Shown here: piece after piece, positions 1-41,400 of the stretch
Position numbering within the stretch: the first letter of the stretch is position 1
Layout of the letters: every line of letters begins with the position of its first letter
Translations under genes and position numbers: made by a program
Notes under the pieces: generated by a model
The model's database searches: none
What the model saw: the letters and a program-made list of their open reading frames with translations, nothing else
What the model was told of the DNA's origin: nothing
Source of the DNA: Takakia lepidozioides
Lineage: Eukaryota > Plantae > Bryophyta
DNA length: 64,000 nucleotides
Direction: 5' to 3'
Assembly: GCA_030704615.1 (NCBI GenBank)
Contig: CM060732.1
Location: 73,284,001 to 73,348,000 of the forward strand

Positions 1-1593
1 TATGGTTCTGCCTCTGGTCTTGTGGGATCAAGGGAAAGATGTGGAGAGTTGTCCACAACTTGTATGCTCACACCAAAAGCTGTGTCACTGTTAACGGACA
101 GAAGTCCAACTTCTTTGACATAGACCAAGGTGTAGCTCAAGGATGTAGTCTCTCCCCTCTGCTCTTCAATGTTTTCATCAATCAACTCCTCGAGGATGTG
201 GAAAGTGAGGGATTTGGGTTAAGGGTGGGTGATACCACCATACCAGCCCTTATGTTTGCGGATGACTTCGCAGGCATAGGGGAGACTCCAACCAATCTCC
301 AGGAGTTGATTGATTGCACGAAGAGATACTTTGATCTTTTGGGGCTAGAGGCTAATGTCAGCAAATGTGCAGTGGTAGCATTCAACGACAGAGGAGAGGG
401 AGGAAGTGATCTTAAGTGGCAGTGGGGTAGCCAAGAGATCCCGGTCCTCCCTTCCTACACTTACCTGGGCGTTGAGTTCTCCTCCAATTGTAATTGGGAT
501 GCACATATCCGGAAAGTTGTTCAAACTGGCAAGGGCAAAGCTCTGGGGCTCACTAAATTTTTCCACTGCAGAGGGGTCAACTCTGAGGTCAAGAAAACCA
601 TGCTTTGTCGCGCTATTAGACCTGCCTTGGAGTACGGATCTGCTATATGGGTTGATAACTCCAACCAGGTTAAGTCTCTAGAATCCATTCAAGTGGGGGT
701 GCTTAAGGAGTGTATGTCAGCATGCTCCAAAACAGCCGATGTGGCTGTTCGGGGTGAGTTTGGCATTCCGTCCTTAAGCTCCCAACGAGATGAATTCAAG
801 GTCAGATGGTGGGGTCAGCTGCAACATATGCCCAACACCAGATATCCTAAGTTAATCGATGGAAACAGGACCGCCCTGTCAAACAGGCTAAGTCCTGGCA
901 GAAGAGAGTAGAAGAGATCCTCAAGGACCTGGACCTGGATCCGCAAGTCTTGACCCTGCTGGATAAATCTGACTTAGAGGCTGTAGTGTCCTCAGCCATG
1001 TCTGTTGCCATGAGATTGTCTGATGGAAATGAAGTTAGGCAGAAAACTTCCCTGAACTTGTTTCCAGTCTGTGACGTGGGGGAGGACATCTTGGATGACC
1101 TCAAGGGTCTACCCACTCTCGGCACTAGACTGAAATTTAAACTCAGGGCAGGAAGCCTACCTTTGAACAGCAAACAGAAGCAGAGAGGAAAGGGAGAGTG
1201 CAATTGCCAGTTGTGTGGGCAATCTGAAGACCGTATTCATTTTCTGATACACTGTCCGGGGTTCTCTCACCAAAGAGACGCTCTCTTCAAATCTATTAAG
1301 GGAATTGTGCCTGTACCCCTGTTTACCAACTTTGAAAGTCTCGAGGCTGAGCCAAAAGCCCAGGCCCTCCTGAGGCCTAGTTTTTGGGCAAATCACACAC
1401 AACAGATTGATGCTTGTGTGAAGGGATTTCTAGAGGATATCTGGAAAACCCAGATTAATTCTTTATATGGAGGTAAGTCTTACTACCAACGTCAGCCCCT
1501 GACAGAGGTAGGTTCTGTCCCTTTTGTTCCCGCTCAAACTGGGCGCGGGGTCAATGGCCACAAGGCTACGGCAAACAACGTCTTATGAGTACA
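1..1593 (+). mobile_element. Non-LINE-L1-type non-LTR retrotransposon (LINE) copy A, 3' part: RT plus C-terminal CCHC knuckle, one frameshift near 860
   Basis: ORF 39-911 has RT motifs QGCSLSPLLF, FADD, YLGV and YGSAIW. ORF 950-1588 has CQLC..EDRIHFLIHC. The element ends in ...GTCTTATGAGTACA, the same terminus as copies B and C. Confidence 0.92.
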
Positions 1594-12163: not shown

Positions 12164-13773
12164 CACTTGCTTCATTGAAAAGAAGAACGTGTAAGGAATT
12201 ATACCTTCGGGCCAACATAAATCTGTTGCTCAGACGACATCTGCTTGAGCTTGGGAAGTGTGACTCAGTAGTGACTTCTTCAACTCAATGAAGTTTGCTG
12301 ATGCCAATGTAACATGCACATTCAACAAAAGATTATCAAGCTGTATGTCAGTTGAAAGATTGAACGACCAAAAGATCATGCAGAGCTGCGGTGGTTGCAG
12401 AGACATTATCAATTGAACTTTGCCCATATTTGTGTGTGTGAGAGATACGATCATCTGGCCGAATTCGTACTAGCTAAAAATCCTCCAACCAAGGGTCCGT
12501 TAGCTGAGTGGTGACCTCAACTTGGACGACCGAGGAATTGTGGTATAGGACATGACTCTAGTGTTGTCGAAATACAAATGCTATATACCAAGAGATATAT
12601 GGTCGTGGGTACCCACAAGGAAGAAAGAAAATGTCATTACAAATGAGTTAATCCTGCAAGCTAGTAGCTGAATACAACAAACATACTAGTCATCATGCCC
12701 TGCATCTCCACCAAATATCATGCTGCCCCACTAGAAATTTGGCCACACTTCTCTATTATGTTAGGATATGTAGTTTTTTTAGAATATGCTAGATAGTCAG
12801 AGTGGATCACTTGTAGATGATGGCATCCACTCATATAATCTCATGGACCAACTCATATCCATTTATCTACCACACTAATATTGAAGTATCCAATGAAACT
12901 CACATCCACCACCGTACACCTCAATTAACCCCTAATGGACGAGGCGACCCGTTTCGGGTCGCATCAGGGTGGCTACAGAATTCATCCACGATGTAACTTC
13001 GTCGGATGACATCGGATGAAAACAATTTCTGAACGAAAGTTGTGCGCCTTGATGTCATGCACCCGCCTGTTTTTATGGCACCCTAAAATAATAAAATCCC
13101 TGCTGTCAGTGATTTTTTTTAGTGTGCAGGGGTGCCCAAATTTGGGTGGTTCAGGGCCTCCAGCACCTTTGACCTAGTGATGTGGCAGGCTAAAGGGGTG
13201 AGGGGGCGATCAAAAGCCGACGACGGGTTTAGGCATGGGGTTGCATGTCCGCCCGTGCGGACACACCCAAGCACCTGAAATAATGATGATGACGGGCCCG
13301 GCAGGTGGCGGGAGCGGCTGGGTATCTTCTCGGGCACAGAGTCTCCAGCCTTCCTTGCACCTTGCTTACGGGCAATTTCTCTCGATTGTCGCTGCTTTAT
13401 GTTTTTGCTGCGCTTGTTTTTGCTATCGTCGCATGCAGCTGATTTGCAAGGGGGGGGGGGGTTCTACGCGTGCTCATTATGAGCGCAGCTCGAGCTGCAC
13501 ATCCACATACTTTCCATGCAGGAAACCAGCGGGAGTCGTTCCGTTTTGCGAGATATGGCCTTGGAACTTGATCTTCCTGTTTCTTATGCATTGACGATGT
13601 TGTTAGGGTTCAATTTGGAGGCGTTGCTGCTTGTACTACCTGCCGTCACAGATGCTAATGCGCGCTGCTTTTGTGTGTGTTCATGTGTGCTGCATTTCTG
13701 TATCTTCATCTCGCATGTTTTCTACATAGGCTTGCATTCATTGGGGTGAGTTGGGGTAATCTGTGTGGGGGTT

Positions 13774-14229
13774 ATGGAATGGATGGCACCTAAACGCAAA
13801 GCCTTGGATGCAGGTGAGCCACCACCACCTCCACTCGAGCTTGCAGGTGCAACAGAGATTATAAGGGATTGGGCTGTGAGGGAGCAGCATTGCACTGAGG
13901 AGCAGTGCAAGGTAATCTTAGGTTGCATGTGTCAAGAGTTCTTGTGTAGTTTGCCTCCACCGCCACTTGCGAATCGGTGGCCTCGTCACCCACGTCCTTA
14001 CAATTTCCGCTTCTTGTTTAGGCGTCAAGTCGCTCTTGTTCTTGGTTGGAGAGAGAGACGAGAGGAAAGAGACAAAGAGGGTTTTAGTGATGCCGTGAAT
14101 TTGGTTCCGAGAGAAGATATCCGGCCCGATGCCGACAGTCAAGCGTCTGAAGGACATGGCTCGTGCAAAGAGAAGTATTCCTGTAAGTGTGATGGCCCCT
14201 CCCAAAGGGGTAGTGAGGAGAAAAAGTAA
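13774..14229 (+). CDS. piggyBac-internal upstream ORF (151 aa from the ATG), unknown function, possibly the frameshifted N-terminus of the transposase
   Basis: Open frame starting MEWMAPKRKA (NLS-like), followed by Pro runs, a Cys cluster and NFRFLFRRQVALVLGWRERR. It overlaps the transposase ORF by 101 nt. Confidence 0.5.
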   Translation: MEWMAPKRKALDAGEPPPPPLELAGATEIIRDWAVREQHCTEEQCKVILGCMCQEFLCSLPPPPLANRWPRHPRPYNFRFLFRRQVALVLGWRERREERDKEGFSDAVNLVPREDIRPDADSQASEGHGSCKEKYSCKCDGPSQRGSEEKK

Positions 14230-16114
14230 TGTCCATGGAGAGAATGCTGGAATTGGGAGATTGTGTGCAAGTCCTGCCTTTTCCATTGACTGTCAAGGTG
14301 GAATTTTGAGTCAGGCGCCGGTGATTCCCCTCATGGGATTGACGAGACCTACTTTGGGTGAGTTGCATCCCAACACGGGTGCGTTATTGAATGTGGGTGC
14401 TTCTTCTTCGGCTCCTGTATACCAGCACGATGGGGCCCATTCAGCTTTTGATGATTTGTTGGGGGACAATGATGGGTACGTGGGAGACTCTGCAGATGAG
14501 GCCGATTGGGATGTTGAGAATCTTCAAATGGAGAGTGATGGTGGTGATGAACCTAACCTGGATTTTCTCAACTTGTTCAAGCCTTGTACCTGGGAAAAAG
14601 GAGTGGGCATCGATTTTGTAAGCGACAGAGATGCTTTTAGTGGCCCCGACCCTGGGCCTTGTCTCCTTGACATGAAGGGTTTCACTCATATTTGGTTTTT
14701 TCACCTGTTTTGGAGGCAATCTGTACTCGAGCGGATTTGCAAAGAGTCCAACCGCTATGCATGTGAAGCGTTGGGTACAGGGACTCGTGGAGGGCCTCGT
14801 TGGAAGGAACTGCAGGTTCCTGAACTGCGGGCTTGGATTGGTGTGTGTCTGTTTATGGGCATGAAGAAGCTGCCCCATACTCGTTGTTACTGGCAACACT
14901 CTGAGGTGTTCTTCTCTTGCCCTGTCATCCACAAAGTAATGACCCGAGACAGGTGGGAGGCCATACTTAGATGCCTGCACCTTGTCGACAATTCCACTCT
15001 GGTCTCTGATCGCTCAAGTCCCAATTTTGACAAGTTGGGAAAGTTTAGATGGGTTTGCGATGAAGTAGTTGCTAGATGCAAATCGTTGTGGAATCTGCAC
15101 AAGATGTTGACGGTGGACGAGCTTATGATCCGTTACAAGGGGAAATATTGTTCGATTAGGATGTACATGCCAAAGAAGCCATGCAAGTGGGGCATAAAAG
15201 CTTGGGCGTTGGCTGATTCAGAAACGCATTATGTGTACGATTTCTCTTTCTACTATGGGAAGAATGAAAAGGGCCCTGAGGGTGACAGGCCAAAAAGTGG
15301 CAAAGGTGAGGGTTATGATGTTGTCACCAGGTTTGCTGCGGGATTGCATGGTTTGGGGCATGTAATTGTCACTGACAATCACTTCACCTCGGTGCAGCTT
15401 CTCTATGACTTGGCCCAAGTTGGCACTTGGGCCACTGGCACAGTCAGATTAAACAGGAGAGGCCTTCCTCCCTCTTTGATTAGGATGAAAAAATCTAGGA
15501 CTGCCAAGCAAGGCCAGTCACGGTACAACATGCATGCTTCTAAGCAACTTGCTGCAATCTTGTGGTGGGACAAGAAAGGGGTATTTCTATTGTCTTCTGC
15601 AGCTAGGCCAGCATGTAGGTCTTCTTCTCCTATGTCTGTAAGACGATTCGTGGGACACCAGAGAGTATCAGTGCCATCTGTTCCTGCACATGTGCAGTAT
15701 CAAACATTTATGCGAGGAGTAGATGTGCAAGACCAGCTTCGAGGTGCGTACAGCTTGCAGCTACACACAAAGAAGTGGTGGCATCGTGGATTCTTCTTCC
15801 TTATGGACACAACAATGGTGAATGCATATATTTTGCATTCAGCCCATGTCACCAAGATGGGCCGGCGGGCCATGAGCCATTTGGAGTTCAATTTGGCGCT
15901 GGCTTATGCATTGACAGCAGTGACCTGCACAGACAATATGGAGGGCATTGGCGATGGGTCTTGCACATTTGTGCATCAATGCCTTCACACAACGCAGAGG
16001 CGGTTGTGTGGTGTTTGTCATGTGCGCACTCATTACTACTGCCCTGGATGTGAGGGCAAACACTTGTGCATTGGTGTGTGCTGGAATGAGGCACATCGCC
16101 ATGGATCGAGGTGA
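14129..16114 (+). CDS. piggyBac transposase (DDE_Tnp_1_7 / PGBD-like), 661 aa, uninterrupted
   Basis: Catalytic triad contexts TVDELMI, VTDNHFTS and MRGVDVQDQ. Also YMPKKPCKWGIK, ATGTVRLNR, KKWWH..F..L.D...VNAYIL, and a C-terminal Cys-rich domain CGVC..RTHYYCPGC...LCIGVCWNEAH. Confidence 0.96.
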   Translation: MPTVKRLKDMARAKRSIPVSVMAPPKGVVRRKSNVHGENAGIGRLCASPAFSIDCQGGILSQAPVIPLMGLTRPTLGELHPNTGALLNVGASSSAPVYQHDGAHSAFDDLLGDNDGYVGDSADEADWDVENLQMESDGGDEPNLDFLNLFKPCTWEKGVGIDFVSDRDAFSGPDPGPCLLDMKGFTHIWFFHLFWRQSVLERICKESNRYACEALGTGTRGGPRWKELQVPELRAWIGVCLFMGMKKLPHTRCYWQHSEVFFSCPVIHKVMTRDRWEAILRCLHLVDNSTLVSDRSSPNFDKLGKFRWVCDEVVARCKSLWNLHKMLTVDELMIRYKGKYCSIRMYMPKKPCKWGIKAWALADSETHYVYDFSFYYGKNEKGPEGDRPKSGKGEGYDVVTRFAAGLHGLGHVIVTDNHFTSVQLLYDLAQVGTWATGTVRLNRRGLPPSLIRMKKSRTAKQGQSRYNMHASKQLAAILWWDKKGVFLLSSAARPACRSSSPMSVRRFVGHQRVSVPSVPAHVQYQTFMRGVDVQDQLRGAYSLQLHTKKWWHRGFFFLMDTTMVNAYILHSAHVTKMGRRAMSHLEFNLALAYALTAVTCTDNMEGIGDGSCTFVHQCLHTTQRRLCGVCHVRTHYYCPGCEGKHLCIGVCWNEAHRHGSR

Positions 16115-18658
16115 CATTTCCAGCTGCAACTGCAACTGGTATCGTGCTCTGTTGGCGTTTCTTGTGTGTGTGAGTGTTCACAGGGTGGCGGGGCTGTGAT
16201 GGCAGGTTTGGTGGTCGCTGTTATGGAGTGCGTTCGTCGGGTGCTGCGTTTCGGGTGCCCAACAATTCCCCATAAATTGATGACGTAGCCCGATTTTTTG
16301 GGCCGGAATCCTCTGCCGGCTCAAGCATGAGTTCCCCGGAATTTGGATTCAAGTAGAAATAGACCCAAATGGAAATCTATGCATGTAGATTGGTTAGAAT
16401 GCTTCCCAATTTTTTATGGTGGTGAGTTTCCACCCAAAGAACAATATAACCAGAGGAACTGACATTGTGATGAAAATTTGGACACATTTGGGGCAGATTT
16501 GGGGTCAATTGTAATGGAGAGCATGTTTGACCCACCAATTTTCCCATACAAAGCAACCCTCATGTGGTTTTGGAATTTGGTTCTAGAATCTTGGCCCAAG
16601 GTGCTCTACATGCCAGGAAATTACAATCTGGGTATGCTGTATCAATGAAAAATCATTTTGCCAGGCCAATTGCTTGGTCAAACCATTTTTTCACTCCAAA
16701 ACTAGAGCACAATAAATATTTACAGCTTACATTTTTGTTATAATCTTCCTAATGACACGGTGAAATCACTTGAAATTTTTACAGTAGGTTCCTGAAGTAG
16801 GTAGGATTACTTTCATACGGTTTATCCCCCTAGATGTTTGCCAAATGTCAGATATGCCCTCAAACATGAGGACATGTTCAGTTTTGGCATGGGCCCACCA
16901 AAAATGGGCTCGTCCATTAGGGGTTAAACACAGGCAGATTTAAACTATTGCAACTATGTTTCTTGTATAGAAATAGATTTCGTTATCACTTTGGATCAGC
17001 TTAATCAAGGTCCTTAATCTTATAAAATGTGTTGTTTCGACCACTGTTGGTCTGGTATCAGTTTTAGGACATACCATACTGGTCCTGGTTCTAGACGTGT
17101 TACAAAACTTCCATACCAATCTAGTCTATATAATAGTGGTGTTTAAATCGGAGATGCTTGGCTCCTAATACACTGATCACAGTGTGTGTGCCTCATGGTG
17201 TAATCGGGGTTTTAAATTTTTTCCCCTCTAAATAATTTATAATAAATATATCAGAGATACAACCCCCCCTGTTTACAAAAAAATAAAAATGTGCGGCTTG
17301 GCACTAGATATCCAAGAGTTTGCAAAAGAAACAACTGACCGTGGGTCAGTGGCACTCAAAGCGATTAAGTGTTTTTGTGCCTTGCCCACATGCATAACGG
17401 AGGTGATCTAGGGTTCAAAGTGTCCATTTTCCAACGGAGTGTGGGAGACCTTTGGGACTATAATTTGCCCTTTGGTCAGTGGCCACATAAGTTACTCTAG
17501 TAGATTAGGGTTAAACAAATTTAGGGTTAGAGAGAGAGAGGGGATGCGGAGCATATTCACAGCACCGTCGCTGAGCCCACGTGCCCAACAGCAAAGATAG
17601 TTCGTGGGGCCAGCAGGGCTTCAATGCTTTCCTCGGATCGCGTGCATCCGAAATCGTTTGTGAGAGATTGTTGTGTTTTGGAGATGGGGTGAACAGCTGC
17701 GGGGATCGGGTCCGGGAAAGGCTGATCCTTGACGAAATTGATAGTGGTAGCAGGCGGTAATGACAGCTTCCCGGCATTTTCTGTGCTCGAGGTCTGGTTG
17801 CACCTGTGTTGATAGCAGCTCGCCACGGTGTGAATGTCTTCCTCTTCGCCCTCTTACTAAGGTATGCCGTCACGGAGTTTTGGTCTTTGGAGGAGAGTTG
17901 GGTCAGCAACCCACCATGAGTTGATCATCTACATGTTTGGTCCACATGCAATTGTTTTCTGGTTGGGAGCTTACAGCATTGACAAACTATCACATTGCCC
18001 CCCTCTAGTAATCGTGAACGGTGTCTGCGGTTCTAGAGTGTGTGGCGACAAGCTTTGACAGGATCTGCTTGATGCTTTTAATTTGGAAGTTGAAGGCTGA
18101 TTTGTCTCCCGGAACGGAGGTGAAGCCACGTGTGGACGATGTTGTGGGTGTATTCTGGTTGTTCGAGCTCCAGCCCTCCATAATTTCTTGCTACCTGATT
18201 TGGACATCCCTTTTCTAAGAGAGATTATAATGAGCTGAAGCTGTTTGAAGACAAGTTGGTGCTTTTCATAATGTTACTCCTCAGTTGATGGATTGCATAA
18301 AATACATTACATCCCTTCAGTCAATTTGGAGAATACAGATTGTCTCTCTTTGCCTGCAAACTGTTAAGCATGGACTTGCCTAAGCAACATGACTTAATTG
18401 GATCTGGTGCACCTTTCAGTCTCTTGAATCCAGGGAAGTTCAGCTCACAAAGGTTTTGTGGTCTTGCTGAGATCGCCAGACATCACTGAATTGCAAGAGC
18501 CCCTCTCTTTTAACAGCAGCTGTTGCTCACGTTGAGCTGTCCATAAGGCGTTCACAGCGACACCTGGCCCAGCAATGCTCTCTATTCAGAGAAATTGGTG
18601 ACAAGTGTTTGGGGCAAGGGCAGTGAAGAGAGTGAGCCAGAGAGACACTCACATCGAG

Positions 18659-32153: not shown

Positions 32154-33705
32154 GGCTACCTCTGCCTCTGCCTCTAGTGGGGTGGCTTCTCTGATATTTC
32201 AGGAGTGTCAGGGAGTGTGCAGCATTCTGGAGTGTTGCAACCAAGCGCACACTAACTTACAACCTGCAACCTGCACCAAAGGTACCAAAGCGAAGCAACC
32301 ATCTCAATCATTGCCACTCATCTTGGATGATTGTTAATGCTCACAGGCCTGGGGAATCGGGATGGTAGGCCAACAGTAATCTTCCCGTTTTCCGCGCCAA
32401 TTACACGGTTGTTGGTGTGGTGTCTTGCAGTGTTGGACAACAGACATGGGGGTGATGGTATGTATGCAATTTGCTCTCCCTGGCGTCCCAGTTTTCCTTG
32501 ACATGCTCATAATGAGACGGTGTCCCGTTCTGAAGCGGCCCTACCTTGGCAGCAGCTCCCCCAGGTGCGTCCCTAACAAACTGAACATGTGCTTGATCTG
32601 AACTCTCTTGAGGTCCTTATGGAATATGGATGCTTTTGGATATACCTAGGTACTTTGTCATTTCAACCCAAATCTTTATGAATCTTCATATTAACTATTA
32701 ACCACTTACATCTTCAACCTATAACTGCAATCGGTAATTCTGGCCCGGTACTATCCCATTCACCCTAAGGAAAAAAATAAAATTCTACCACTTCAGATTT
32801 GAAGACGGAAAAAATTCGAAGACAGTAGTGTTAGTGTAGCTGTAGTTATTTTTTTAAAATAGAAAAAGGAAGGAGCCCTTAAAATCCTAACTTTGAGCGG
32901 TGGGTCCGACTGGCCAACCCACTAGGAGTGCAAAAATGTTTATGCTCCAATGTTTTACTACTAGTATTTTATCCCAAGGTCAGAGTTACTAATCCAAACG
33001 TGCAGGATTGCCATCGGATCACCTACTTTTCACCTTTCTACTGACTAGGTGCTATGTAGGCCGCCCCAAGTGTCTACAGAAATGCGCACTTTTCCGGATT
33101 GAAGCAGACACCTGAGTATTTGAAGTAGAATTGGATTGAGTGGGATGGCTGGAACAAAATTGTAGACATGGAAACATTCTTGGCTGGCAGCAGGAATGAC
33201 AAAATTTCTCAGGCATTTTTTTGCAAAAATATTTAAAGGGAAACATGCGGGATCGCACCGCTCAAAAAAGATTCCCTTTAAAAAAAAATGAATATTGGAA
33301 AGTATGGTTTAGGTATGGCTTAGGTATCACAGAAAATAACAGAAATTTCAGGGGGACAGCTCCCCTTTCAGTTTTTTTGCTTTTTAATGAAAGTTCATTA
33401 GGATGCAAAGGCTAGCCATTTGTTGTACCAATTTTTTTAATTAAAAAATTATTGTTATTGAATGATCTGATTTATAACTTCTCTCAATTTGAGGTCACAA
33501 ATAATAATAATAATAATAAGCTTTGACAATTTGGTTTTTTCTTTGTATCCACATCAGGTTTTTGGAGATATCCATTCTGTGAATTCTTCATATTCATAAT
33601 CCTTACAGACCACCTGCACATTAAAAAATCAAACAATTGGACATCTCTATGTGTAGGCTCCACCCAACCCTGAAAGTGGCAATACTGAGGGGAAGAGAGT
33701 CTTAA

Positions 33706-34223
33706 CCCCTAAAGGACCACGCAATTCTCAATGTAGTCAAACTTCGATCTGTAGCTCTTGAATTTGAGAAAATTATTTTTTAAATATTTTTCATAGATGA
33801 ACCTATATGTTTACTATAAATCCAGAATTGTCTCATTAAAAGTGAAATATTATGATTTTCTTAAGCTTAATGTCTTCAAAAACTCATATCAATTACAATA
33901 AGTATCCAAAATTTATGAAAATTTTACCTTGGGTGTAAATCACAATGAAAACCACATTAGTGTATTTAAAAGTAAAAAAAAGTTCTTAAGTTGAAAAATT
34001 CGATAGAAAAACTATGCTGAAGAAAATTGCTAGAAAATGAATTGGTAATTGCTAGAAAAGATTCAGTAATTGGAATTTTGATGACTCATAAAGTGGAATA
34101 GAGACTAGACTTGATTATCTTTACTTTGTTAGTTCAACTCAAATGCAAAAAATATTGTTTTCAAAGTGTAAACTAAGTTTGACCAGAGAGAAGCCTCTGT
34201 TGGGCCTCTTGGGCATTTAGGGG
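33706..34223. mobile_element. Non-autonomous piggyBac-type MITE (518 bp)
   Basis: TTAA at 33702-33705 and 34224-34227. TIRs CCCCTAAAGGACCA and (rc) CCCCTAAATGCCCA match at 12/14. The interior is AT-rich and non-coding. Confidence 0.82.
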
Positions 34224-35383
34224 TTAACTTAATTAGCTGTCTTGGGCCAGCTTCATCTCTGTTCTCTACTTTATTGTGTTTCTCATTCAGCAAGTCTATC
34301 AAAAAATGGTCAAAAACTACAAAATAGAATGAATGTTTGTTTGTTTTTTCTGTTTTTCTTAAAGGGGCAGGAAACCCCAAAATTGCATTGAAAAGGTGAG
34401 GAAAAAACAACAAAGGCGACGAGGCAACAGCCCTAAATGTAGACATCAACTTACGTAGGATCACGCATAGACACTGTTTAGGGCAACTTCCTTTTTTATG
34501 ATTGATTCTTGAGGTGTCCATTGTCCACCTTCCTACCGGAGGGCAGTAGTCCTTGGGGGGTCAAGAAACACCATAATTTACGCTTCCTTTGGGAGGCGTC
34601 ATATATTACTATGATTGATTGATTCTCTTCTTTTTCCGATGGGTTCCTGCAGTAGTTATGATAGTTCTGTGGTTCAAACTATGAATAGTTCACTCGTAAT
34701 ACTCTGTTTGACTGATTTGTCCTACAAATCTTCTGTCGCTCCCAGGTTTCCTTTATTTTTATTTTTTTAAATTGAAATAAAATATGGAAACAATACTAGG
34801 AGAAAATATTAAATAAACAAATAAACAAATCCAATACCCATTGTAAATTTGCCATCTGGAAACCGACAATGGACAACCGCCTTCCGACATGCTGCCGTGT
34901 GGCATGTATTCCATTTTTTCCCAAATAAAATTGAAATGGCCAATTCAATCTCTCCCACCTCCGACCCCTGGGCGGTCCCTAGTGTTTCCCTTAAACAAAA
35001 AATCAACCCACTCACTCGGCCAATCCACACACCGAGGGAAACAAACGTTCTGCTGTGTCCTTTGGTTATAAAAATCCTTGGTCACATTTACGCATTTTTA
35101 ATACATCATTTTGATAGTTCACCTTTCAACTTGGCAAAGGCAAAGGCAAAGAAAAAACATCGACAATAGACAATACCCACAAAACACATTGCCGCCAAAC
35201 TTGTTGAGCACCCAAAGATTGTCGGTGACTAGCATTTTTGCCAGTCAACATCACATCAAGTTGGGAAAAAAATCAAGTCGGATTCGGGACCTGTGTGGCA
35301 AACATTCCAACGTGGGAACCTTTGCAAACAAACCCCCCTTCAAAAGCCTTAGATCCCGTAAAAATATCCCACCCTTCGCCGTT

Positions 35384-36605: not shown

Positions 36606-38485
36606 TGTATGGGGATGCGAGCCAGGACATCAACAGTGGGGATCAGTGTGAGGGAGTCGGGACGGAGGGGGCAACAAGAGGTGGGGCGGTTCTGCGAGCA
36701 GGAGGCGACATGGCATGGCAAGGGATGCAGGCGACGTGATGAGAGGAGCACGGGCATAGCTCATTAATGCCAGAGACGGCACGTCCGTGCCCCCCCTGCT
36801 CTGCTCCCACTGCACGCCTTTCCTCGTTTGCTGTGCACCCCGACCACCCCTACATCCTGCTGCCTTCCCAAATGGTGCTGTCTCTCGGGAACTTCATGTC
36901 ATTCGTCTTTAGTGGGGGGGGGGGTCTTGCTTGTCTCTGTAGAATTTTCTCTCTCTCTCCCGGTCAGTAGCTTCTTTCTTGAGCATCTCTCAGCTAGATA
37001 TCTCATGGGGAGCGTGGCTCACCAAGGAGGAGTCTAGCCAAGACTGGGACTGTATCGACCTTCACTCTATCTGGGTTTCTTTCTCTGCCAGCGAGGGCCG
37101 ACCTTTGAGAGTTTTCGCTTGAGTCTGGACACAATTCTCTTATTAAACGCTGCAGATCTCCAGGCCAGACTGCTTACTGCATAGCTTGAATCCTGTCTCC
37201 AGAGCCAGCAGCGACTGTTGTTGTCGCTTATGCAATGGCTCCACCTTTGTGACATCACGCCGGTTTGAGAGCTGGCGCTGGAGAGAAGACTGTCTTCAGA
37301 CCTAGCTCCGAGTACTCGCTGTATTGCGCTGCAGGTGCGTCTGCGCTAATGTCATATACGAGTATGTGAGCGGCAAATTTATTGAGGTTATTCCCTTTTG
37401 ATCGAGGGTTTGAATGCTCGTTGCGTATGAAACACAGACTCGTCCCAACTACTATATATTGATTGCTTCTAGCCTATCTACATGATCCATGGGATGTCTA
37501 TTATGAAATGACCGCGCCTGCAGGGCTAGAAAGGAAGATGGCAGCTTGGATTCTGGACTAAACAACAATGCATGCATTTCAAGGGAGTCTAGGAACAATG
37601 TCGAAAAACAAAATCAGTTCAGACCGTGTACAGAGTAGCGTATCGGCGTTCTAGCGGGCCTTCTAGGTTCCGTTTCTAGGGCCCAGTTCTAGGTTCTAGA
37701 TGGGGTCCATACAGTCAGAAGTACTAACTTCATTGAAAATGATCACCACGATTGAGTTTCTGCCTGGCCACAAGCCGAAGGTTACACCTTCTCTGAATTA
37801 CAGTCCTACATTGAACAGCCAGACTACAGAATTTCTTCCTCCGTGGTCATTGTTCTGAAATTCACTGGTATATGTCCACGGCTCGTCTGAACTTAACAAT
37901 GCAGCTTTGATTGAAAAGTTCGAACTCGTCTATATTGACTGTACTAATCTAACAAGAGCTGCCTACTAATGTGAGTTTCATGATGTGGAAAGAACCCAGC
38001 TCGATCTTAGCCCTGCTTGGAAGACCAAGTGACGTGACCTCGGATATATAATTTTTTATGTGTATGTAAGCAACTGAGGGAGAGCTTCTCTAGAGCAGGA
38101 CGCGGACCAGATCGGGAGAGTTATTTATTGTGGCCCTTGGAACCCAGGTGTTCAGGCCTGCAGTGATTCTAAGTATGAACTCTCCCATACTTAAGGGGAA
38201 GTCCAGTTTATTAATCCACTGGATGTGCAATGAGTGTGGGTATCCATACGGTGCCTATGGCTGCAAGATTTTCCACTCAAATGCACGGAGTCTCACCTTC
38301 CAGAACCTTTGATGCACGGCTTTGGTTGGTCCATTGTCTTCTAGATCTATAATGTTCACCTGGGAGAAATTTTCTGCACGAGTGTCATATGGATAATTGG
38401 ACAAATTGACATTGTCGTGATATTTCAGAGACTGACAAGTCACTGGTCACGGAAACTGGGATGCAGGGTCCTGCGGTTGCATAAG

Positions 38486-41400
38486 ATGAGCCACCTGCAG
38501 TGTGTTGGGCTCAATCAACTGAGAGACACGATGACGGACTACAACTCCAGCATGGAGTCGGGATCCTCGGGCGAAGAAGGGTCATCCACGGTCCATCCAA
38601 TGCACAATGCTTGCGACCCATCCATGTGGGACGGACCCTGGACACAGGCTTCATCCGCTAACGAAGTGATCACCAGCAACTCAATGTCAGAACTTGCTGG
38701 GAATTCACCGTTTACACTCAGCCAAGCTGACATACTCACCAATTATTGGCTTTCTGGCTTCCACCCCATGTCTCATGCAGGTTCAAATCTCTGTGTGGAC
38801 CAGTCTAGACAAGACCCAAATCATACAGATCAGCCAGGAAACTTCATACCAGATGCGCTAAGTGCTATTGAAATGAGCAGCTCCCCCTCAGTTGATCGAG
38901 ACAGTTCCAGTCACATATCCGCACATTTCTCTGGACTGTATGAAAGAAACAGTGCATTGAAGCATCAAGTTACAGGGCCAGGTTTCGCGGTGACTACTCA
39001 GTCCTACGAGGGAGTGGAAACCTACGGCAAGAGCGCAGACGGTGGATCTCACTTTGCCTACGGAAAAACGTCGGCATCAAATACTGCATTGCAATTGCTG
39101 CAGTCACTTGACCAAGAGTCGCCTTCCTCTCCCTTGGCACCTAATAGCTCCATGTTGCAACAGTTTTCGGGGCACTGGGATGCGACACACCCACTGTTAA
39201 CTTGGGCAAACTGTGAAGCTACCTCCCAGGCCTCAGGCACCACTTTGCAGTTGATGCAGGGTGCCAACCAGTTCTGCACAGACGTTCAGCAGCTACCTGC
39301 CAAACGAGAGCTCTTCCCTAGCACAGTGGTGGACACGTATTACGACAACTATAATGACTCAAGGTCAAATGGGGAAATCTCTTCACAAATGATCGATCAG
39401 TTGGAGACACTCATGCAAAGAAACGTTGTCCCGTCGACCAACACAGAGTTTCTTATCGGCTCCCGAGGCACCTACAGCGCAACGGCTGGACCGTGGTCTC
39501 ACATCTCAGAAGTGGGCTCCCCTATTCGTGGGCCACTCAAGCTGATGCCAACCCTGATGCATGATGGACGAGACGCAACTAATTTCAGTCCAAACAATGT
39601 CACCTCAGTTGGCTCAAACAGCTGTCTGAGCCGCGATGATCAAACGCCTAGTGTGGTTACCGGTGCCATTTCCAGCATCTTTACTAGCTCTGCCAGAGAG
39701 GAGGCACCAGCTGCTGGCGACCAGAACGGGAAGCATCGGTTTGATCTTCTCCAAGTTGAGGATGAAAACACTCCCCCTCTCAAACGGCAAAGCCTTGTAC
39801 GTGTTACCTTGTCATTTAATAAGATATCTCTGACCCAAGTAAGACGATTACGAGTCACCAGTTGGTGCAGTACTGCATGTCAGAAGGGTGTACTAACATT
39901 TTAGCTTTCTAAAATGTTTTCTTTTCCAATGGATTTGAGAGCGCTTATATCTAACATCTGGCAGAGTTGTCATGTGAATCCAGATGCAGTCCACAGTAAG
40001 TTAGAATTAGAGCATTTGCGAACTTACCAAGGGACCTAGATGTAATAGATTCTCCATAGTCGCTTTCTGGACAGAGCCATGACCTAAATCTTTCAGATGC
40101 TTCTACATAGTCGTCAGGAGTTCGTTGATGAGTGTATTGCTAGGATCCGGTAACTAACCTTCCGCAAACAGCTGAAATTGAATCTGCTAGGTACTTAGTG
40201 TGTACTGATCCCGTGCTGATCTAGCGCCTGTAGCTACTACCAGCGGTTGTTGTTTATCTCTCGAATGGTTTTTGCCTAGTTGAGATCGATATTTTTATGT
40301 AAAGGAGATTCGTTCATGACTAGGCAACCATGATTTTGAGCAATTGGCAGGACACAGCTGCATTATCATGGCAGCGAACTCCGGCTTTGAGAAGGGTAGA
40401 GTCCAAGACGTTTCCATCCACATGCATGGCATCACAGGCGATGGATCTCATGGTCGCAGTTGGTCCTGCACTTAACACCAATGGTAAACCTAGAGCACGG
40501 CGTGGATCTGCCACAGACCCCCAGAGCGTCTACGCCAGGGTATTACAAACTCCCAGGACTGCTCGATTGTGCTCATAATTGGCTGATGTATTCTTTAGTT
40601 GAACAGATCAACTAGTCCAGTGTGTAATGTTAGTACAACTGGCTGTCTCTCTAAATAGCACAGTAGGGGAACTACTCACTCAAACACTTGCTCTATAATA
40701 ACCAATTTGCAGCAAAGGCGAGGAAGGATCAATGAGCGACTCAAGATCTTGTGCAACTTGGTACCCAATGGGGCGAAAGTAAGTCTGCTCAACAAGTTCC
40801 AGATTCATTTTCATGTGCATGCATTATTCTGAATTTTATGGATCATATTAAATTATAGAAATCTCTCTCGGAGAACTAACTCCAAGTCTAGGACATCTGG
40901 TTCCCAATATAATCAACGTTTCCGTCGATATATGCTTATATTTAAGTGTTCTGCTCGGTACTGTCATTTTTATGTGATGATTGAGCAAGCGCTCAGCTCA
41001 TTTGAATGAGCTTTGAATGCAGGTAGACATAGTGACGATGCTCGAGGAAGCTTACCATTATGTCAAGTTCTTGCAGCTTCAAGTCAAGGTACATGGCAAG
41101 CTTGAAATTGAAAAACTTTATATATGGTATTGAAAGACTGTCATCCCGAACTAAAAGACTGTCAAAGGATAGGTTCAAGGTCAAGCAAAACTCTGTCCAC
41201 ATAGCCTCGCGTACTGTGTGCCAACATCTAAAGCTTCATGCAAGTAGGCTGCATGATAGGCAGGTCCTCTGTATCGCTATGTATATTACAAATATCTCAA
41301 CGATCATGTAATCTTAGGGCATCTTAAATGTGCACCGTAAAGAATTGTGGCACGACCAAAGTATCCAGCCTAGTATGTGATGATTGACTTCTTATGCTAA

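Follow-up and report, generated by a model that had tools for sequence, protein, structure and literature searches.

Does the genome of an early-diverging land plant hold a complete and recently inserted piggyBac transposon, and does such an element carry anything beyond its transposase? This question is raised by a 64-kb stretch of DNA listed under Takakia lepidozioides (assembly GCA_030704615.1, contig CM060732.1, positions 73,284,001 to 73,348,000; hereafter the window, with positions counted from its first letter), in which an earlier inspection of the letters (the sequence-only reading) had reported a structurally intact, recently or currently active piggyBac. In our analysis the element is likely to be an autonomous member of the piggyBac superfamily, complete in structure and young, in the nuclear genome of a eukaryote, probably a moss; it is equipped with a second gene, open reading frame 1 (ORF1).

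The element measures 3,995 bp and is bounded by TTAA on each side (whole span 12925-16927; the coordinates of its parts are collected in Table 1). An inverted-repeat search returned a single 19-nt pair, TTAAs included, that is 100% complementary, and the 19-mer of the element end gave 0 matches in 100 shuffles and is thus not expected by chance. The terminal repeat proper (CCCCTAATGGACGAG on the left, its exact reverse complement on the right) is exactly 15 bp long because position 16 of the two arms is unpaired, and it follows the pattern CCCC...GGGG, that is, the piggyBac-type 5'-CCC start and GGG-3' end. The flanking TTAAs indicate that this copy arrived by TTAA insertion. Beyond the 15 bp the ends are asymmetric: a subterminal palindrome abuts the left repeat, and an equivalent was not found at the same distance from the tip on the right, where TGGGCCCA lies 27 nt from the tip. 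The CCCCTAA tip of the left repeat is shared with the right end of a related 6.15-kb family (contig L009, discussed below) and with a miniature inverted-repeat transposable element (MITE) that begins at 33702.

Within these ends, a stop-free gene encodes the 661-aa transposase. The protein matched Pfam DDE_Tnp_1_7 (PF13843) with an E value of 2.5e-74 and 251 bits (cutoff 22.4) over profile positions 5-349 of 349, and the only matches in a PDB sequence search were piggyBat (9c0f) and the piggyBac of T. ni (6x67), at E ~1e-28. When aligned by HMMER, D330, D416 and D532 (along with D535) fall on the T. ni piggyBac (6x67) motifs LTIDE, CDNWF and GVDTLDQ, and the columns of D330, D416 and D532 are at least 90% conserved in an alignment of 41 homologues. 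Towards the C-terminus, residues 612-658 contain 8 Cys and 7 His, including CxxC, CxxC and CxxxC arrangements, with C638, C641, C647 and C651 in nearly invariant columns of the same alignment; the residue pattern points to a Cys-rich, putative zinc-binding domain. An AlphaFold2 (AF2) model built on the homologue alignment had a mean predicted local distance difference test score (pLDDT) of 79, with 389 residues, located in the core, at 90 or above. For the C-terminal domain the model shows a helix plus a pair of short beta-hairpins at pLDDT ~90, and residues 1-127 stayed below 50 and are disordered in the model. A Foldseek search with this model ranked 6x67 first (E 6e-29, template modelling (TM) score 0.75) and 9c0f next (TM 0.71), followed by Tn5. 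An exact-protein look-up found no record of an identical 661-aa protein. Taken together, sequence, fold, ends and target duplication display every testable defining sequence feature of a piggyBac element, and on the perfect 15-bp repeats with TTAA on both sides, the uninterrupted transposase, the three catalytic Asp contexts and the Cys-rich C-terminal domain the sequence-only reading was right.

Akin to T. ni piggyBac (IFP2; 6x67/6x68) and piggyBat (9c0f), the window element shows TTAA duplication and short CCC...GGG repeats, and its transposase combines a DDE_Tnp_1_7 core, carrying the same three (plus one) aspartates, with a C-terminal Cys-rich domain. It differs from both in four respects: (i) the transposase is only ~21-22% identical to theirs in structural alignment; (ii) its disordered N-terminus is longer; (iii) ORF1 is added as a second gene; (iv) the host is not an animal. 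Compared to T. ni piggyBac, moreover, the Cys/His pattern of the window transposase resembles a longer H/C-rich type, and Pfam zf-Tnp_2 finds no match in it. By analogy with the family, the transposase, a DDD enzyme, would bind the CCCC...GGGG ends via its Cys-rich C-terminal domain and excise the element through hairpin intermediates, and the element would then be reinserted at a TTAA that is duplicated in the process.

To place an upper limit on the age of the insertion we counted stop-creating single-base changes and ignored insertions and deletions, whose inclusion would tighten the bound. In the transposase 4.35% of all possible changes are of this kind, and in ORF1 4.86% are, corresponding to 108 nonsense targets per substitution per site, to which we added 38 end bases (30 from the terminal repeats and 8 from the target duplication). 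On this basis the chance of finding everything intact falls from ~23% at 1% divergence to ~5% at 2% and to ~1% at 3%. The intact ORFs, repeats and duplication therefore imply that the insertion is young (at most ~2% neutral divergence) or that the copy is under selection. This supports the sequence-only reading in part; the currently active, plant-adapted family that it proposed would go further. The best surviving alternative, which we nonetheless consider unlikely, is that the copy looks complete and is dead or permanently silenced, a recent relic disabled by inactivating missense changes or by host methylation. The element does lie in repeat-rich DNA (Pfam searches on 18 other ORFs of the window yielded retroelement domains only), and plants usually silence repeat-rich regions. 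A further point in favour of such a relic is that only ~40% of the intact-looking piggyBacs tested in human cells were active, according to a 2025 mining study in Nat Biotechnol (PMC13461360), although the present copy has kept all residues in the conserved catalytic and Cys columns, along with both ORFs, the repeats and the target duplication.

The second gene alters the count of the sequence-only reading, which had recognized the transposase correctly and had missed ORF1, so that the element holds two genes rather than one. ORF1 runs into the start of the transposase gene, which is read in the +1 frame. Its only database relative (P0197, 76% aa identity) lies together with the beginning of a related transposase gene on a contig of 1.4 kb (L014), which comes from run SRR15431198, shotgun DNA from Takakia lepidozioides; the sample consisted of washed T. 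lepidozioides plants, and fungi were also present (PMC9021317). Between the window and L014, ORF1 is alignable, whereas the DNA upstream of it is not. Outside the overlap ORF1 shows a dN/dS of 0.165 at a dS of 0.94, while within the overlap dS drops to 0.34, as would be expected of dual coding; the transposase frame (0.18) is more constrained there than the ORF1 frame (0.43). The transposase ATG and the basic N-terminus that it opens (MPTVKRLK...) are kept from exactly that ATG in the two sequences. A distant ORF1 homologue is found at L009:959-1531 (29% over 82 aa, BLASTP E 5e-10), where it overlaps the start of a +1-frame transposase that is 35% identical to that of the window, and the overlapping ORF1/transposase layout is hence present in both L014 and L009. 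Given the close relative, the low dN/dS and the homologue of the same layout in L009, we conclude that ORF1 is real and has long been retained, and its pattern of substitution indicates purifying selection. Its affinities are less apparent: three ORF1 homologues matched none of the Pfam families at E up to 10, a profile search against the PDB at E up to 10 gave no match, and a comparison with the Atlas gave no usable match. Nor did Pfam and PDB searches at E up to 10 detect a likeness to P2RX7_C (the P2X7 C-terminal 'ballast' domain) or to P2X7 structures. The AF2 model of ORF1 (pLDDT 48) was too poor for a fold search.

We favour the view that ORF1 helps or regulates transposition in this particular lineage and is most likely made as a separate protein from a transcript shared with the transposase. 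Alternatively, the two frames could be joined in a single fusion protein with ORF1 as its N-terminal domain, if ribosomes shift by +1 or a short intron is removed within 14099-14226. This is quite unlikely in our judgement. The transposase does stand in the +1 frame relative to ORF1 in two independent lineages (window/L014 and L009), an agreement that has a chance of ~1/2 with two possible frames, and the overlap is highly conserved, but the constraint there is stronger in the transposase frame than in the ORF1 frame. Conservation of the transposase from exactly its own ATG likewise speaks for a separate start, and neither a slippery site nor a conserved pair of splice sites was identified. 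A depletion of ATGs between the ORF1 and transposase starts, as considered for leaky scanning, was not significant (3 observed versus 5.8 expected, P 0.16).

Relatives of the transposase provided additional insight into the lineage. The best of them are 42-45% identical and all come from metagenome or Sequence Read Archive (SRA) contigs, and the nearest named proteins are animal PGBD4-like proteins with 33-36% identity. In a tree of 48 transposase sequences, the window transposase falls within a 12-member clade (Shimodaira-Hasegawa-like approximate likelihood ratio test (SH-aLRT) support 99) that stands apart from the named animal PGBD4-like proteins. Only environmental/SRA proteins make up this clade (P0001, P0002, P0005/P0008, P0038, P0035, P0011/P0034 and P0003/P0004/P0006), and both ORF1-bearing lineages, those of the window and of L009, lie inside it; the transposases of its members are 35-45% identical to that of the window, none reaching 50% or more over the transposase.

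Elements of the same clade have moved. In the P0034 family, which occupies two or more insertion sites, the ends read TTAA-CCC and a homologue of ORF1 is present; its transposase carries an N-terminal region ~500 aa longer than that of the window. L009:1-6152 is a 6,152-bp two-ORF element of the form TTAA-CCC...GGG-TTAA that extends from TTAACCCTTTAATGTGCC to an imperfect inverted partner, GGCACTCTTAGGGGTTAA. The same family, whose sequences stem from Joint Genome Institute (JGI) metagenomes and SRA runs SRR358162xx-358164xx, recurs at L008:4961 onward and at L012:619 onward. L008 and L012 have different DNA to the left of the element, with the TTAA as the point of divergence, giving at least two insertion sites, and three assemblies break precisely at that TTAA; the L009 family is therefore multi-copy and the clade mobile. 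In L001-L007 and L013 no element ends were found, these contigs being too short.

Three features of these relatives are recorded in their own right. The annotated 1,164-aa product of L009 probably begins too far upstream, as a basic N-terminus like that of the window starts at an in-frame ATG at 1272. Downstream of the transposase, inside the same 6.15-kb element, L009:5131-5517 encodes a 128-aa ORF that has no Pfam match and no counterpart in the window element. In L013 (P0004 family), an upstream ORF (1-354) and the transposase ORF (355-2538) share one frame and are separated by a single stop, and the upstream part bears a weak W..C....C likeness to ORF1, which may reflect a third two-part layout or chance.

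Could the element be foreign to the plant, as a contaminant or misassembly derived from an associated fungus or animal, or as a very recent horizontal arrival? The animal affiliation of the nearest named relatives (33-36% identity) and the provenance of the closest relative, L014, from a shotgun sample in which plant and microbiome DNA are mixed and fungi are present would fit such an origin. The element is, however, part of an unbroken 64-kb window and has a G+C content (0.486) near that of its surroundings (0.45), and a TTAA-flanked MITE with CCCCTAA ends resides 17 kb away, so that we regard a foreign source as very improbable. Apart from contamination, the lineage itself may have been acquired horizontally in the recent past. 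That the locus is a domesticated, PGBD-like host gene instead of a transposon is scarcely credible: an intact ORF in a family under purifying selection would suit it, but domesticated PGBDs are devoid of repeats and target duplications (PMC5381638), whereas here perfect repeats and the duplication are both present, the full catalytic triad is kept and the surroundings are retroelements.

Several observations weigh against our preferred interpretation of a young, autonomous, plant-resident copy with a working second gene. An intact ORF is no proof of an active enzyme. Neither a second copy nor a transposase fragment of this family occurs within the 64-kb window, and the flanks have no paralogous uninterrupted copy there that would represent an empty site. 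Further copies were likewise not detected among metagenome contigs, where a transposase search and an exact search with the 19-nt end both returned no match. As to the land-plant host, a 290-aa reverse-transcriptase ORF of the window (39-911) has its best relatives, with up to 51% identity, on unnamed contigs; its sole named match is to Ectocarpus, a brown alga (36%), and it does not obviously belong to a plant-typical lineage. The case for the host is circumstantial: the T. lepidozioides shotgun origin of L014 points to a moss-like land plant as probable, with Takakia itself less certain. With respect to ORF1, the protein has no recognizable family or confident fold (Pfam, PDB, Atlas, AF2) and its role is a guess, and no ORF1 is found upstream of the transposase in the P0005 family (L001).

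A more far-reaching proposal, which we advance as doubtful, is that this clade is the first case of a piggyBac system built from two components. Transposition would then require ORF1 as a helper or regulator, which might act in recognizing the ends, in import into the nucleus or in shielding the element from silencing; within an early-diverging moss the family would remain mobile, with insertion polymorphism between populations, and it could provide a plant-native, footprint-free TTAA vector. Two-protein designs exist in other superfamilies, PIF/Harbinger elements having a Myb-like ORF1 in addition to the transposase and MuDR having mudrB in addition to mudrA. The window element resembles these as a cut-and-paste element with a second conserved non-catalytic protein, but it belongs to another superfamily, its ORFs overlap, and its ORF1 has no recognizable DNA-binding or other domain.

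How novel is such an element? A 2017 survey of the superfamily placed piggyBac in eukaryotes 'except in plants' (PMC5381638), and RepeatMasker tables give 0% piggyBac for a liverwort and traces for a fern. The 2025 mining study reported 'Group 4' PiggyBacs of fungi, land plants and algae (PMC13461360); land-plant piggyBacs as such are already known from that report, and the novelty claimed by the sequence-only reading was in this regard overstated. An upstream accessory ORF is not described for 'Group 4' in the accessible text of that study (PMC13461360), whereas the window element has one. Within an incomplete coverage of the literature, we found no paper linking piggyBac transposons with Takakia and no description of a two-ORF piggyBac. 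What is new here, to a moderate degree, is a conserved overlapping accessory gene in a piggyBac of a probable early-diverging moss.

piggyBac ranks among the main tools for delivering genes and for taking inserted DNA out again without a trace. A complete copy native to an early-diverging land plant would provide a concrete sequence with which to test for active plant piggyBacs. We know of no ORF1-type helper for the tool versions of piggyBac, and the present element would be a naturally occurring piggyBac with a long-kept second gene, ORF1 persisting across lineages with transposases only 35% identical. It would also give a starting point for asking whether vertical descent or horizontal transfer accounts for the spread of the fungal, plant and algal branch described in the 2025 study. 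This value is tempered by that report of land-plant piggyBacs and by T. ni piggyBac, which is already functional in plants (PMC5381638).

Table 1. Parts of the piggyBac element, in window coordinates.
Feature	Positions	Strand	Basis
Left TTAA target-site duplication	12925-12928	.	Read from sequence; within 19-nt perfect inverted repeat
Left 15-bp terminal inverted repeat	12929-12943	+	Sequence read, inverted-repeat search, shuffle control
Subterminal palindrome, 8-bp perfect stem and TTT loop	12944-12962	.	Single-stranded DNA fold z -3.1; abuts left repeat
ORF1, 151 aa, conserved accessory gene	13774-14229	+	Homologues and indicated purifying selection
Overlap of ORF1 3' end and transposase 5' end, 101 nt; transposase in +1 frame	14129-14229	+	ORF list
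piggyBac transposase gene, 661 aa, ATG start, single exon, stop-free	14129-16114	+	Pfam, PDB matches, fold model
Catalytic D330 codon	15116-15118	+	HMMER alignment to T. ni D268
Catalytic D416 codon	15374-15376	+	HMMER alignment to T. ni D346
Catalytic D532 codon, D535 after it	15722-15724	+	HMMER alignment to T. ni D447
Cys/His-rich C-terminal domain, residues 612-658	15962-16102	+	Residue pattern, conservation, AF2 model
3' non-coding region	16115-16908	+	ORF, RNA and structure scans
Right 15-bp terminal inverted repeat	16909-16923	-	Exact reverse complement of left repeat
Right TTAA target-site duplication	16924-16927	.	Read from sequence

The 3' non-coding region of the element contains no ORF of at least 80 aa and no tRNA-like or Rfam match, and its RNA structure is not unusual (z 0.10); an Rfam scan of the whole window gave no match either. 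The MITE mentioned above (33702-34227) is a 526-bp, AT-rich, TTAA-flanked non-autonomous element with imperfect ends (CCCCTAAAGGACCA / CCCCTAAATGCCCA); apart from the CCCCTAA tip it has no internal similarity to the autonomous element, and it has no second copy in the window. Further along, positions 38417-39904 encode a 495-aa Ser/Thr-rich ORF with a GTG start and no Pfam match, which may belong to a host gene, as one of its exons, or to a transposable element.

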